Virus record (IMG/VR): IMGVR_UViG_3300032323_001214
Location: 1-64,000 of that record
Direction: 5' to 3' (one strand)
DNA: 64,000 nt
The translations under genes were made by a program, and so were the position numbers. The notes beneath the pieces are model-generated. The model did not search any database. It saw nothing but the letters and a program-made list of their open reading frames with translations, and was not told where the DNA came from. Positions 1 to 13,908 of the stretch are shown in pieces. Positions within the stretch are counted from its first letter, which is position 1; every line of letters starts with the position of its first letter.

Positions 1-9
1 ACCCCCATA

Positions 10-84
10 TGGTCCACAGCCCCAGAATCGAACTGGGCTCTCTCGGCTTAAGAGGCCGGACTTCGCCAGCAAAGTTTGCTGTGG
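10..84 (-). tRNA. tRNA-Lys(CTT), atypical (A8, short D/anticodon junction)
   Basis: Minus strand CCACAGC/GCTGTGG acceptor, CGGC-CTCTTAA-GCCG anticodon arm, CCCAG-TTCGATT-CTGGG T arm, encoded ACCA end. Confidence 0.85.
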
Positions 85-145
85 ATGGATCGTAACTATT
101 GTCTTTTACGTGCCATCCAGGACCATACGGGGGTCTAGGATGACA

Positions 146-169
146 CTATCGTTTACCTGAACGTTTCAT
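146..169 (-). CDS. putative mini leader peptide MKRSGKR
   Basis: Strong SD AAAGGAGA 5 nt before ATG; own sigma70 promoter just upstream; TAG abuts a hairpin. Confidence 0.55.
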   Translation of the reverse strand: MKRSGKR

Positions 170-192
170 GTCGTTCTCCTTTAAAAAAATGT

Positions 193-221
193 ATTGTATC
201 AGACAAGTTAATTATTGTCAA
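193..221 (-). promoter_or_regulatory. sigma70-type promoter inside the tRNA array
   Basis: TTGACA (221-216), 17 nt spacer, TACAAT (198-193). Confidence 0.8.
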
Positions 222-224
222 ATT

Positions 225-299
225 TGGCGCCTCCTGATGGAATCGAACCACCATCCCGACGTTCGTAGCATCGTATCCTATCCATTGAACGAAGGAGGC
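225..299 (-). tRNA. tRNA-Arg(ACG)
   Basis: GCCTCCT/AGGAGGC acceptor, CGATG-CTACGAA-CGTCG anticodon arm, TTCGATT T loop, CCA. Confidence 0.93.
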
Positions 300-308
300 A
301 TAAATTGT

Positions 309-383
309 TGGTACTCAGTACGGGAATCGAACCCGTCTTTACAACTTGAAAGGCTGTCGTCCTAACCGATAGACGAACTGAGT
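309..383 (-). tRNA. tRNA-Glu(TTC)
   Basis: ACTCAGT/ACTGAGT acceptor, ACAGC-CTTTCAA-GTTGT anticodon arm, TTCGATT, CCA. Confidence 0.93.
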
Positions 384-387
384 ATAA

Positions 388-445
388 CAGGATGCGTTTT
401 GTTTTCACCATAAGAAAAGTTTTTAACTTTGCTGTTAGCATCCTA
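388..445 (-). ncRNA. small structured RNA, skipping-rope-like (closing stem plus ACAGCAA)
   Basis: AGGATGC...GCATCCT stem; ACAGCAA immediately 3' of the 5' arm; internal TTTTC-TTATGGT-GAAAA hairpin; family assignment from memory, not searched. Confidence 0.45.
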
Positions 446-449
446 AATC

Positions 450-524
450 TGGTGGAGACCGAGGGAGTTGAACCCTTCTAGTCATGATCCTTGCAAGGGA
501 TCACCGTAGCCCGCTACTGCCCCC
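450..524 (-). tRNA. tRNA-Ala(TGC), non-canonical D arm
   Basis: GGGGGC/GTCTCC acceptor with G3:U70, discriminator A and CCA; TGATCC-CTTGCAA-GGATCA anticodon arm; D arm reduced to GTAG-CGGG-CTAC. Confidence 0.75.
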
Positions 525-531
525 GTATTGT

Positions 532-607
532 TGGTCTCCGTACTAGGATTCGAACCTAGACCACTCGGCCCCAAACCGAGTACGCTGCCTGATAACGCTT
601 TACAGAG
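532..607 (-). tRNA. tRNA-Pro(TGG)
   Basis: CTCTGTA/TACGGAG acceptor, CTCGG-TTTGGGG-CCGAG anticodon arm, TTCGAAT, CCA. Confidence 0.92.
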
Positions 608-615
608 ATTAAGAT

Positions 616-692
616 TGGCGTCCACCGTCGGTATCACACCGCACTCCAAGTTAGCTGGTTAAGCTAACCTACAGATCTCCTGTTGAGTGGAC
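616..692 (-). ncRNA. tRNA-like RNA with CCA end, degenerate T arm, apparent AAC anticodon
   Basis: GTCCACT/GGTGGAC+GCCA acceptor, ACAG-GAGAT-CTGT arm, GTTAGC-TTAACCA-GCTAAC arm, CGGT-GTGAT-ACCG in place of the TTC loop. Confidence 0.6.
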
Positions 693-749
693 TGACTTAT
701 ACTTTGATCGTTGCCACCACAGCATTGACTACTCATATAAGCACTAACT

Positions 750-827
750 TGGCAGAGGTAACTGGATTCGAACCAGTGATCACGATTTCAAAGACCGTTG
801 CTTTAGGCCAAACTAAGCTATACCCCA
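750..827 (-). tRNA. tRNA-Gln(TTG)
   Basis: ACGGT-CTTTGAA-ATCGT anticodon arm, ACTGG-TTCGAAT-CCAGT T arm, weak 1:72 pair, CCA. Confidence 0.93.
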
Positions 828-836
828 ACAAATACT

Positions 837-911
837 TGGCGATGCGTGGGAGAATCGAACTCCCGTCTTCGGATAGACAATCCGAGATAATGACCATTAT
901 ATGAACGCACC
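837..911 (-). tRNA. tRNA-Asp(GTC)
   Basis: GGTGCGT/ACGCATC acceptor, TCGGA-TTGTCTA-TCCGA anticodon arm, TTCGATT, GCCA. Confidence 0.92.
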
Positions 912-917
912 TAATAC

Positions 918-995
918 TGGCTCCGTGATCTGGGATCGAACCAGACTCATTTCTGATTAACAGTCAGACGCCTACACCTTGCTTGCTCTCACGGA
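918..995 (-). tRNA. tRNA-Asn(GTT)
   Basis: TCCGTGA/TCACGGA acceptor, TCTGA-CTGTTAA-TCAGA anticodon arm, TTCGATC, GCCA. Confidence 0.92.
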
Positions 996-1056
996 ATAAA
1001 AAATATGTCACTACAGTATATCCGTCAGAGGGATATATACTGTTCATCTGTAGTAA

Positions 1057-1123
1057 GCATTCTAAAACATACTTCGGGGATTTCACTTAACGCCTCCCTA
1101 ACTCAAAGTATGTTTTAGAATGC
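1057..1123. repeat. 18-bp perfect inverted repeat (long RNA stem)
   Basis: GCATTCTAAAACATACTT (1057-1074) and AAGTATGTTTTAGAATGC (1106-1123). Confidence 0.9.
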
Positions 1124-1266
1124 CGTGTATTGCTACACGACATGATAGGGTTGATACCCTACCCAGTAGTCTTACTAATGTGTTATCGCCACACGTTCAT
1201 GTATACTGTCCGCCCATTCGATACATTTTACGCTGTATTCCGGCTCTCGTTGCCTATTCACGTTTC
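1124..1266 (-). ncRNA. multi-stem structured ncRNA of unknown family
   Basis: ACATGA/TCATGT closes a junction of three hairpins; flanking CGTGTA-GCAA-TACACG GNRA hairpin; no credible ORF. Confidence 0.5.
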
Positions 1267-1411
1267 TATCAATCCTCAAGTAAATATTTGTCTTTTACTC
1301 TTAGTTGATAGATTCTAGCACGGTCGATTTTATTTTGTATCAACTGTGCTACTTGCTCCTTAGTCAAAACATGATTGCTAAACCAATCTTGCTTTGTTTC
1401 AGAAGTCGTGT

Positions 1412-1440
1412 ATTCTATCTGTTTATCCATTTATTGTCAA
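1412..1440 (-). promoter_or_regulatory. sigma70-type promoter at the head of the RNA array
   Basis: TTGACA, 17 nt spacer, TAGAAT. Confidence 0.75.
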
Positions 1441-1467
1441 ATTTCCTTTTGTTGTTTTTTAACAACA

Positions 1468-1508
1468 CAAACAAAAACCCCTGAGACTTTTTAGTTTCCC
1501 AGGGGTTT
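1468..1508 (-). terminator. intrinsic terminator (attenuator) upstream of the tRNA array
   Basis: AAACCCCTG...CAGGGGTTT stem followed by TTGTTTG. Confidence 0.8.
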
Positions 1509-5468: not shown

Positions 5469-5879
5469 TTATGAGAATAGCTGATTTGCAGTAACGTAGT
5501 CTGTTTCATTTATAATGTCAATAGTTTCTTGTTCGACTACAGTTAAGATAATACCAGTAGCGTCTAAAAATTTAGCTCTGGCCTTTAAAAAAGTGGTATG
5601 TGCTGGTGAGGTATTCCAAGCGTCAAACCTATCTTTGTCAGCATAATATGTTAAGGTAATTTTATCTAAACTATTTGCATCTTCTACCCAAACATAATTA
5701 GTTACACAGTTTAAACTCTCTATTTCAGGTCTTGCCTCAATAACAGCTATTGCATATTCCGTTTCTGCATCAGTTGTCTCTGGTAATGACAAATAATCCA
5801 TTGGTTTTCTATAGGTTACCTCACCGTTTGCTGTCCATTTACACGCTACTAAATACATAAATAACTCCTTATTATACAA
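5469..5879 (-). CDS. hypothetical protein, possible ABM-type monooxygenase fold
   Basis: FDAWNTSPAH resembles the WxxSxxH motif of ABM/IsdG proteins; TTG start. Confidence 0.4.
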   Translation of the reverse strand: MYNKELFMYLVACKWTANGEVTYRKPMDYLSLPETTDAETEYAIAVIEARPEIESLNCVTNYVWVEDANSLDKITLTYYADKDRFDAWNTSPAHTTFLKARAKFLDATGIILTVVEQETIDIINETDYVTANQLFS

Positions 5880-7409: not shown

Positions 7410-8246
7410 ATGTTTACATCTACCCCTAAAATATTTGCTCATGTATCATCTGTAAATAAAGGTAACTTTGTATTACCTGAAGTTATACTCAACAAAGCTG
7501 ACAACGGAGTAAACTTATTTCATAGATTTTGCCCACATAGAATGTATCCACTACATAATACCGGAGAACATGTAGAAAATATCGTATGTAAATTTCACAA
7601 CTTTGAATGGGATAAAGATGGTAATCCTTTAAATAATCCTAAAAAGTTAAAATGCGGAACCGCTGAAGTGGGACGATCCGGATTAGTATTTAAAGATTTT
7701 ATTGAACCTGATCATCAATGGGTAGATGATTTAGCAAAAGAAACAGAATTGGTGTATAGTCATTCTTTTCAAGGAGAAAGTAAAGGAAGCTGGCTATGGT
7801 TAATGGATGCTGAAGCAGATTTGTTACATTTATACAAAGGTGGTATACATCCTTTTTTATCTCAGCAAATAGAGCTAAATGATATTGTACTTGACCAGGG
7901 CGATGGATGGATACTTCAACATCACCCAAATGGCTGGTGGTTATATATATTCCCCTTTACTTTTGTAGAATACAGCAGACCAGGATGTGTTATGGTTAAT
8001 ACAGTTATACCTGATAATATAGATACTGAGTATGGATTTAAATGGATTACACAATTTTACTATAGCAAAGATATACATCCCAATACTCGTATGATATTTG
8101 AAACACTAGAAACTGTCTTTAAAGAAGATGTTGCTACAGCAGAATTACAAAAGGGAAATTACTTTCCGTTAACGAAGGCGATGAACCGATATGAGGATCA
8201 TTGCGTATATTTTGGCAATTGGGTTAAAAATAATAAATTAAAATAA
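7410..8246 (+). CDS. Rieske non-heme iron oxygenase (ring-hydroxylating alpha-subunit-like)
   Basis: CPH...CKFH Rieske ligands; DLLH....IH and EDVATAE mononuclear Fe ligands. Confidence 0.88.
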   Translation: MFTSTPKIFAHVSSVNKGNFVLPEVILNKADNGVNLFHRFCPHRMYPLHNTGEHVENIVCKFHNFEWDKDGNPLNNPKKLKCGTAEVGRSGLVFKDFIEPDHQWVDDLAKETELVYSHSFQGESKGSWLWLMDAEADLLHLYKGGIHPFLSQQIELNDIVLDQGDGWILQHHPNGWWLYIFPFTFVEYSRPGCVMVNTVIPDNIDTEYGFKWITQFYYSKDIHPNTRMIFETLETVFKEDVATAELQKGNYFPLTKAMNRYEDHCVYFGNWVKNNKLK

Positions 8247-13361: not shown

Positions 13362-13908
13362 AAAATTAAACGTTGACAACTTTGAACAAATGCGAGTAGA
13401 GTTAGAATTAGCAACAACTGACAGAGTTATACAAAATACAAGATACTGGGGAGAACCTTATAAATGGTTTAAAGAAAACGCACCAACGTTCTATAACTTT
13501 GTAGAAAGTAAAAGAAAAATTTCTACTAGATTTTGTAGATTTTATCTAACTCCCCCAAATAGTAGTCTGCAGCCACACATTGATGGCACCAGTTCTTATA
13601 GATCACCGATTGGATTAAATATCCCTATATCGGGTTATGAGGGTAGTACAATGGATTGGTATATTTGCCCGAATGATAATTTTGATGATGGACATCATGG
13701 ATTTGAAAATATCCCTGCTAGTAAAGTTATAGACTTTACTAAATTAGAAAAAATAGATTCAACTGTTATTGATTGTCCTACATTTGTTAGAACTGATGTT
13801 GTTCACGGGATCGATAATTACAAATATACTAATAGACTAGTACTAAGTATAAGATTTCCGTATACTAAAATATTTGGTCAAAAATTTGAAGATGTTTGGA
13901 AATTTTAA
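13348..13908 (+). CDS. putative DSBH oxygenase
   Basis: PHIDG...GLNIP...RTDVVHGI...RLVLSIR; close paralog of 11749..12336. Confidence 0.7.
   Translation: MVLYKKLNVDNFEQMRVELELATTDRVIQNTRYWGEPYKWFKENAPTFYNFVESKRKISTRFCRFYLTPPNSSLQPHIDGTSSYRSPIGLNIPISGYEGSTMDWYICPNDNFDDGHHGFENIPASKVIDFTKLEKIDSTVIDCPTFVRTDVVHGIDNYKYTNRLVLSIRFPYTKIFGQKFEDVWKF

Follow-up and report, generated by a model that had tools for sequence, protein, structure and literature searches.

A lysine-codon mini-ORF and mutually exclusive RNA pairings in front of the tRNA-Lys genes of uncultured giant phages: a candidate ribosome-operated switch

Why would a phage place a ribosome-binding site and a seven-codon, lysine-containing reading frame directly in front of a tRNA gene, in an RNA that can fold in two mutually exclusive ways? 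We encountered this arrangement at the end of a 249.6-kb IMG/VR contig (IMGVR_UViG_3300032323_001214), the first 64,000 nucleotides of which constitute the window analyzed here; position 1 of the window is the contig end. The window has a GC content of 37.6% and encodes portal, major head, baseplate-wedge, and ribonucleotide-reductase proteins, as expected of a giant tailed phage, and a tRNA array occupies positions 995-10 of its minus strand. The same phage is present in a 348-kb ENA scaffold, hereafter L185, and the public runs that hold the sequence are freshwater, lake, plankton, and estuary samples.

A first-pass annotation, made from the sequence alone, had described a promoter, a strong Shine-Dalgarno (SD) site, the mini-ORF MKRSGKR, a hairpin starting at its stop codon (hairpin A), and an alternative pairing onto the 5' end of tRNA-Lys(CUU) (helix B), and had inferred a translation-coupled switch in tRNA maturation. 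Direct reading of the minus strand confirmed each of these elements at the positions given. However, the annotation missed a long-range helix (helix C), the self-pairing of the ORF (P0), and a second tRNA gene, tRNA-Lys(UUU), which starts at window position 6 and runs off the contig end. The features of the module, all on the minus strand, are as follows.

193..221 (-): sigma-70-type promoter, with TTGACA at 221-216, a 17-nt spacer carrying TG at 201-200, and TACAAT at 198-193; 11 of 12 matches in a promoter scan, with the TG just before the -10 box.
175..182 (-): SD sequence AAAGGAGA, 5 nt before the ATG.
146..169 (-): mini-ORF ATG AAA CGT TCA GGT AAA CGA TAG (MKRSGKR), with ATG at 169-167, Lys codons at 166-164 and 154-152, and TAG at 148-146.
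141..173 (-): P0, the ORF folded on itself; GACAU (172-168) pairs with GUGUC (146-142), and CGUU (163-160) with AACG (153-150); -7.5 kcal/mol.
110..146 (-): hairpin A, starting at the G of the stop codon; the outer stem pairs 146-138 with 118-110, the inner stem pairs 135-132 with 124-121, and the loop is 131-125; -19.6 kcal/mol.
91..110 (-): small hairpin S, CGUAA (110-106) with UUACG (95-91) and an A-rich loop; it is compatible with both folds and stacks under helix B.
82..119 (-): helix B; UGGAUGG (119-113, the 3' arm of hairpin A) pairs with CCAUCCA (88-82), the last 4 leader nucleotides plus the first 3 of tRNA-Lys(CUU); -13.1 kcal/mol together with S.
120..134 (-): 5' arm of helix C, which is the inner stem and loop of hairpin A.
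1..15 (-): 3' arm of helix C, comprising G71-A76 of tRNA-Lys(CUU) (15-10), the spacer UAU (9-7), and the first 6 nt of tRNA-Lys(UUU) (6-1); the duplex is -29.7 kcal/mol.
10..84 (-): tRNA-Lys(CUU) with encoded CCA, as called by ARAGORN; it is atypical, with C1-G72, A8, and a 4-bp anticodon stem.
1..6 (-): first 6 nt of tRNA-Lys(UUU); the rest lies beyond the contig end.

Because tRNA-Lys(CUU) starts at position 84, helix B covers positions -4 to +3 around its RNase P site. Helix C (15 nt, 14 Watson-Crick pairs plus 1 G-U) was found both by an inverted-repeat search and in the minimum free energy (MFE) fold of 224-1 (z = -5.9). What, then, is the gene whose first six bases it covers? In L185, the sequence continues with a tRNA carrying the anticodon UUU at 7544-7614, which scores 43.9 bits against the Rfam tRNA model, although ARAGORN misses it because of its unusual T-loop. 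The first-pass annotation had noted, as a caveat, that the leader uses AAA codons whereas tRNA-Lys(CUU) reads AAG. This caveat is resolved, as the leader precedes a tRNA-Lys(CUU)/tRNA-Lys(UUU) pair and the second tRNA reads AAA.

Could the module be a chance feature of an AT-rich spacer, where short ORFs and hairpins are common? The exact tRNA-Lys(CUU) sequence occurs in only 3 contigs, but an ORF pattern with 22 specified bases hit 101 viral contigs, and in total, the module recurs in about 180 IMG/VR contigs as 143 distinct versions. On the other hand, megablast and blastn searches of GenBank phages found only tRNA matches and none to the leader, and an exact-pattern scan of 185,579 bacterial and archaeal species genomes gave 0 hits. 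No Rfam family matched window 85-224 at E up to 1, or L185 7330-7465 at E up to 10. ARAGORN found no tmRNA in the window, and the only Rfam hit to a tmRNA model, in L185, was far below threshold at 12.6 bits; moreover, the ORF has an SD site and an ATG, unlike a tmRNA tag frame. In our literature searches, we found no paper containing the peptide string and none describing a leader ORF before a tRNA gene or permuted tRNAs in phages.

The ORF behaves as an ORF in these homologs. Every real module has an in-frame ATG to TAG of 6, 7, 8, or 9 sense codons (39, 89, 7, and 2 contexts, respectively), and an SD core (AGGAG, AAGGA, GAGG, or GGAG) lies 5-9 nt before the ATG in 130 of 137 contexts, although the sequence further upstream is unrelated between loci. 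The promoter is an optional part of the module, a strict match being present in 39 of 137 contexts, whereas the others have a tRNA or a gene directly upstream. Codon 2 is AAA in 127 and AAG in 9, and the second-to-last sense codon is AAA in 136 of 137; there are 2-3 Lys codons among 5-8 non-Met codons, compared with 4.2% Lys in the phage ORFs. The 8-9 codon versions add a third AAA (MKRKSAKL, MKRSKTAKR, and MKRGKSAKR). The rest of the peptide is not conserved. Codon 3 and the last codon are often Arg, but they change together, as the inner stem of P0, into Leu, Ser, Gln, Pro, and other codons, and we therefore rejected arginine sensing. We also rejected read-through of the TAG: the frame stays open to the window end, but one sequence (L002) has a 1-nt insertion and another (L003) an in-frame TGA just after the stop, and the genome uses TAA, TGA, and TAG as stops. 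These results suggest that what is selected is translation and lysine codons, not a peptide, although translation itself is inferred from the sequence.

The module is linked to lysine tRNAs. Of the 143 modules, 131 are followed by tRNA-Lys(CUU), and in 118 of those, tRNA-Lys(UUU) is the next tRNA called; in 113 of them, it lies 2-7 nt on, and in the others, a tRNA-Lys(UUU)-like gene that ARAGORN misses sits in between. Four modules are followed directly by tRNA-Lys(UUU). Among 3,429 tRNAs in the same arrays, only tRNA-Lys(CUU) has a recurrent SD-preceded mini-ORF, against a background of mini-ORFs before about 2-16% of the other tRNAs. The phage uses AAA 534 times and AAG 210 times.

Are the competing pairings conserved? 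To test this, we examined a MAFFT alignment of 113 distinct modules that was not fitted to any structure. Hairpin A is 96% paired, with 5 pairs changing on both sides; helix B is 85% paired; and helix C is 93% paired, with 8 pairs changing on both sides. For each, 0 of 500 shuffles reached the observed covariation score, and the slid controls reached at most two-thirds of it. Furthermore, alignment column 149, in the shared arm, covaries with both of its alternative partners, column 114 (hairpin A) and column 186 (helix B), the triplets being U-A-U in 60 sequences, C-G-C in 15, and A-U-A in 14. The homologs may be closely related phages, however, so counts of covarying cells overstate the number of independent events. 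Hairpin S is 85% paired, with U.AAA invariant. The outer helix of P0 is 94% paired, and the same two-tier hairpin is predicted in nearly all 75 ORF variants, with a covarying inner stem (CGUU/AACG, ACAG/CUGU, GAG/CUC, ACUG/CAGU, and AGCU/AGCU). tRNA-Lys(CUU) covaries in all four stems, so it is a real tRNA-shaped RNA even though the Rfam model does not score it.

Length changes on the two sides of helix C also match. The spacers UAU, AUAU, and UAUAU between the two tRNAs go with CGUAUGG, CGUAUUGG, and CAUGUAUGG in the hairpin-A loop (as DNA, TAT/CGTATGG, ATAT/CGTATTGG, and TATAT/CATGTATGG), and the acceptor starts GGGGGU, GGGAUC, and GGAAGU go with ACCCCC, GAUCCC, and ACUUCC. Variants without tRNA-Lys(CUU) keep the pairing between the hairpin-A loop and positions -9 to +6 of tRNA-Lys(UUU). 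The conservation of the alternative pairing in homologs supports the interpretation offered by the first-pass annotation.

Two exclusive folds of the transcript can thus be drawn. In the open fold, hairpin A forms, both tRNAs adopt cloverleaves, and their 5' leaders are single-stranded, so that RNase P could cut. In the masked fold, the ORF closes on itself as P0, the 3' arm of hairpin A pairs across the RNase P site of tRNA-Lys(CUU) (helix B), and the tip of hairpin A pairs with the CCA end of that tRNA, the spacer, and the first 6 nt of tRNA-Lys(UUU) (helix C), burying both cleavage sites and two acceptor pairs. Forcing helix C gave a lower energy than forcing hairpin A plus the acceptor stem in 111 of 115 modules, by 8.7 kcal/mol on average, and the unconstrained MFE equals one of the two folds in 115 of 115. 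The masked fold is the calculated ground state, whereas RNAalifold on the alignment returned the outer stem of hairpin A plus the cloverleaf. Nearest-neighbor energies omit tRNA tertiary structure, and the two folds are probably closer in energy than calculated.

How might a ribosome choose between them? We propose, with moderate confidence, that this is a cis-acting leader that controls the release of the phage's own lysine tRNAs, with the ribosome as the sensor. The three pairings would form a relay, P0, then A, then B plus C, as GUGUC pairs either with the start-codon region or with GGCAC, and the 3' arm and tip of hairpin A pair either with its 5' arm or with the tRNA ends. A ribosome held on the ORF because Lys-tRNA is scarce, either at AUG with AAA in the A site or at the AAA one codon before the stop, would keep P0 open and leave GUGUC free to seed hairpin A, and the tRNAs would be released. 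The spacing AAA-NNN-UAG-GUGUC places a ribosome waiting at the second AAA right against the hairpin base. On the other hand, a ribosome that runs to the UAG would unwind the 5' arm of hairpin A and then leave, favoring the masked fold. The result would be negative feedback on the supply of tRNA-Lys. The anatomy, its conservation, and the covariation of the competing helices come from the sequences, whereas translation, the blocking of RNase P, and the direction of the response are inferred, the last from standard ribosome footprint sizes rather than from data. The geometry is also tight, as a ribosome stalled at the second AAA would reach the first bases of hairpin A. There is, nevertheless, a precedent for the output, as a designed sequestor hairpin over a pre-tRNA 5' leader blocks E. 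coli RNase P in vitro and in vivo (PMC7897497).

RNA data are consistent with expression of the leader, but only weakly. In two freshwater metatranscriptome runs (X16 and X27), contigs at least 88% alike cover it: bins 89-176 have a summed depth of 569-1156 in X16 and 238-270 in X27, compared with 62-79 and 16-52 for the tRNA and 22 and 7 for the promoter bin, respectively. One 134-nt contig spans the RNase P site. These depths sum over related phages, tRNAs are poorly captured, and DNA carry-over cannot be excluded.

Could the same anatomy be explained without lysine sensing? One possibility, which we consider unlikely, is that helices B and C, about 22 bp in total and possibly nearly coaxial, form a processing stem like those flanking rRNAs, at which a double-strand-specific nuclease such as RNase III would cut the closely spaced tRNA pair apart; hairpin A would only time this, and the ORF would serve at most to open P0. 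Helix C does center on the 3-nt spacer, other long stems that include tRNA CCA ends occur in the same arrays, and the masked fold is the MFE. However, this model does not explain the SD site, the in-frame ATG to TAG, the length steps of 3, the two fixed Lys codons, or why only Lys tRNAs carry the leader. In addition, a cut inside helix C would fall within or next to mature tRNA ends, and tandem tRNAs with short spacers are probably separated by RNase P in the normal case. Equally doubtful is a general translation-driven remodeling, in which any ribosome passing the mini-ORF flips the fold and couples tRNA release to overall translational capacity or to transcription-translation coupling. Only two Lys codons are present in most versions, not a run as in classical leaders, the SD site is strong, and the peptide is otherwise free. 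AAA at codon 2 and Lys at the second-to-last residue may each favor efficient initiation and termination in E. coli, so they could be fixed for reasons other than sensing. Yet the exclusive association with the tRNA-Lys pair, among more than 40 tRNA species in the same arrays, has no reason under this model, the longer ORFs add further AAA codons, and the masked target is the very tRNA that reads AAA.

It is still less likely that the released leader of about 100 nt is itself the product, acting either in trans as a stable small RNA, for example, on pre-tRNA-Lys or host tRNA-Lys, or as a minigene that ties up particular tRNAs through peptidyl-tRNA drop-off, as the lambda bar minigenes do. Short RNA-library contigs of 68-121 nt do cover just the leader at a higher summed depth than the flanks, and the ORF is of minigene size with a strong SD site. 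However, the depth pattern can be explained by the summing of conserved segments of many related phages, the last sense codon, which defines the tRNA trapped by a minigene, varies across 15 codon types, and the complementarity is to the adjacent cis partners and tracks them locus by locus. A chance origin is refuted by the recurrence of the module with covariation in four helices and fixed codons.

The inferred sensing logic resembles that of leader-peptide transcription attenuators such as trpL, hisL, thrL, and the pheST leader pheM, which also combine a short SD-led ORF carrying codons for the amino acid concerned with overlapping pairings chosen by the ribosome position, and give feedback on the supply chain of that amino acid's charged tRNA. 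Here, however, no terminator-like site was found on the minus strand of window 1-1500, hairpin A being followed by GUAAAAGA and helix B by the tRNA body; the regulated product is the tRNA itself rather than a biosynthetic enzyme or a synthetase; the output is burial of tRNA ends; and there are only 2-3 sensor codons, one of them codon 2, a weaker enrichment than the runs in hisL or pheL. In translational attenuation of the ermC and cat type, a ribosome paused in a mini-ORF melts a hairpin and uncovers a downstream site without a terminator, as we infer for this leader, but the trigger is an antibiotic together with the nascent peptide and the uncovered site is an SD sequence, whereas here, the peptide is not conserved and the sites are the RNase P sites and acceptor ends of two tRNAs. 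The synthetic RNase P riboswitch (PMC7897497) shares the output principle, a hairpin that sequesters or exposes the single-stranded 5' leader, but it is man-made, controlled by theophylline, and acts on one tRNA, whereas the present element is natural and, we infer, ribosome-driven, and also masks a second tRNA and a CCA end through a long-range helix. In the processing stems of rRNA operons, flanking sequences also pair to enclose a structured RNA, but the stem here includes mature tRNA nucleotides, competes with a conserved local hairpin, and is coupled to an ORF. T-box riboswitches are cis RNAs that respond to the state of one tRNA species, as this leader is inferred to do, but they bind uncharged tRNA directly, carry a specifier loop and the T-box motif, and control synthetase or transporter genes; no T-box match was found, and an ORF stands in place of a specifier.

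A more far-reaching reading, possible but tentative, is that this would be the first natural example of a ribosome-operated switch acting on tRNA maturation. Giant freshwater phages would measure the availability of lysine tRNA by translating a two-lysine mini-ORF and would unmask their own tRNA-Lys(UUU) and tRNA-Lys(CUU) precursors only when that tRNA runs short, for instance, when a host anticodon nuclease of the PrrC, RloC, or PARIS type destroys host tRNA-Lys. The leader would then be an on-demand counter-defense device.

Regulation of individual bacterial or phage tRNAs after transcription is almost unexplored, and control of RNase P access by a switching leader has been built only synthetically. 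A natural switch present in about 180 contigs would show that leader-peptide logic has been applied to the tRNA itself, closing the shortest possible feedback loop, from codon to ribosome to the tRNA that reads the codon. It would provide a compact, portable part of about 100 nt for making tRNA output, including that of suppressor tRNAs, depend on translation status. It would also give a testable reason why large phages carry their own tRNA-Lys, which is the commonest target of anticodon-nuclease defenses. The module also shows that the tRNA arrays of uncultured giant phages hold dense, unannotated RNA structure.

In addition to the leader, the tRNA array and its surroundings contain the following features (window coordinates):
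10-84 and 450-524, the genes called as tRNA-Lys(CUU) and tRNA-Ala(UGC)
384-449 (minus strand), a copy of a repeated inter-tRNA element
608-749 (minus strand), a 142-nt gap between tRNA-Gln and tRNA-Pro
996-1268 (minus strand), the intergenic region upstream of the tRNA array
1269-1430 (minus strand), a 53-aa ORF upstream of the array
1412-1440 (minus strand), a second near-consensus promoter directly before that ORF

ARAGORN calls both tRNA-Lys(CUU) and tRNA-Ala(UGC), but neither is reported by the Rfam tRNA model, even at E up to 10 in the case of the Lys gene. The Lys tRNA has C1-G72, A8 instead of U8, and a mismatched first anticodon-stem pair in 86 of 91 homologs; nonetheless, all of its stems covary. 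Furthermore, we observed that two independent assemblies, the one ending at window position 1 and that of the relative L002 (position 13991), break within one base of each other, just after the first 6–7 nt of tRNA-Lys(UUU). Two forms of this tRNA circulate, one with a canonical T-loop and the other with UCAGUAC, which probably splits the assembly graph. The gap between tRNA-Gln and tRNA-Pro contains tRNA-like fragments ending in GGUGGACGCCA, but no tRNA is called there.

Could some of the spacers between the tRNA genes themselves hold tRNA-like units? The repeated inter-tRNA element has the form UUUAGGAUnn..CAGCAA....nnAUCCUGUU and is present in 203 distinct copies in the fetched loci, and its closing helix covaries. 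In addition to the window copy, it was seen at 9640-9759 in L185 (the ENA scaffold of the same phage), and at 5655-5775 and 6340-6535 in L003 and 2093-2212 in L008, two of the fetched loci. Most copies are about 60 nt and look empty, as the window copy does. On the other hand, copies of about 110–125 nt fold as a T arm, an acceptor stem closed by a short loop (GGCUUCAUGCC) and a D arm, plus an anticodon-like hairpin. This arrangement is a circularly permuted tRNA-like unit whose ends meet in the closing helix. A literature search found no paper on permuted tRNAs in phages.

The intergenic region upstream of the array holds an 18-bp perfect inverted repeat (1057-1074 with 1106-1123) and also shows a peak of RNA-library contig depth at 1189-1276, of 150–350 in the freshwater metatranscriptome run X16. 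It may be another small RNA. The promoter before the 53-aa ORF (TTGACA-17-TAGAAT) scores 11 of 12 matches.

In the relative L002, a 20-codon hydrophobic ORF (MVVLLVLIIFGALYFIMRKL) with its own SD site lies at 13745-13807, between tRNA-Phe and the Lys leader. In the locus L038 (minus strand, after a degenerate module), the same upstream gene end, SD site and ATGAAACGT open a gene that starts MKRVIEVRAAEGGEDSKLF. In many other loci (among them L010, L040, L076, L077, L114 and L125), that same context opens the Lys mini-ORF instead, which suggests recombination at the shared start.

Finally, a long hairpin was observed downstream of tRNA-Lys(UUU) in L003 (6110-6262) and in the loci L008, L016 and L092. 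Its 5' arm starts in the CCA end of tRNA-Lys(UUU) (CCAUAUAAAAACAC...), its 3' arm (GUGUUUCUAUAUGG) abuts the next tRNA, and it encloses about 90–100 nt of variable sequence. This is another case of tRNA ends buried in flanking helices.
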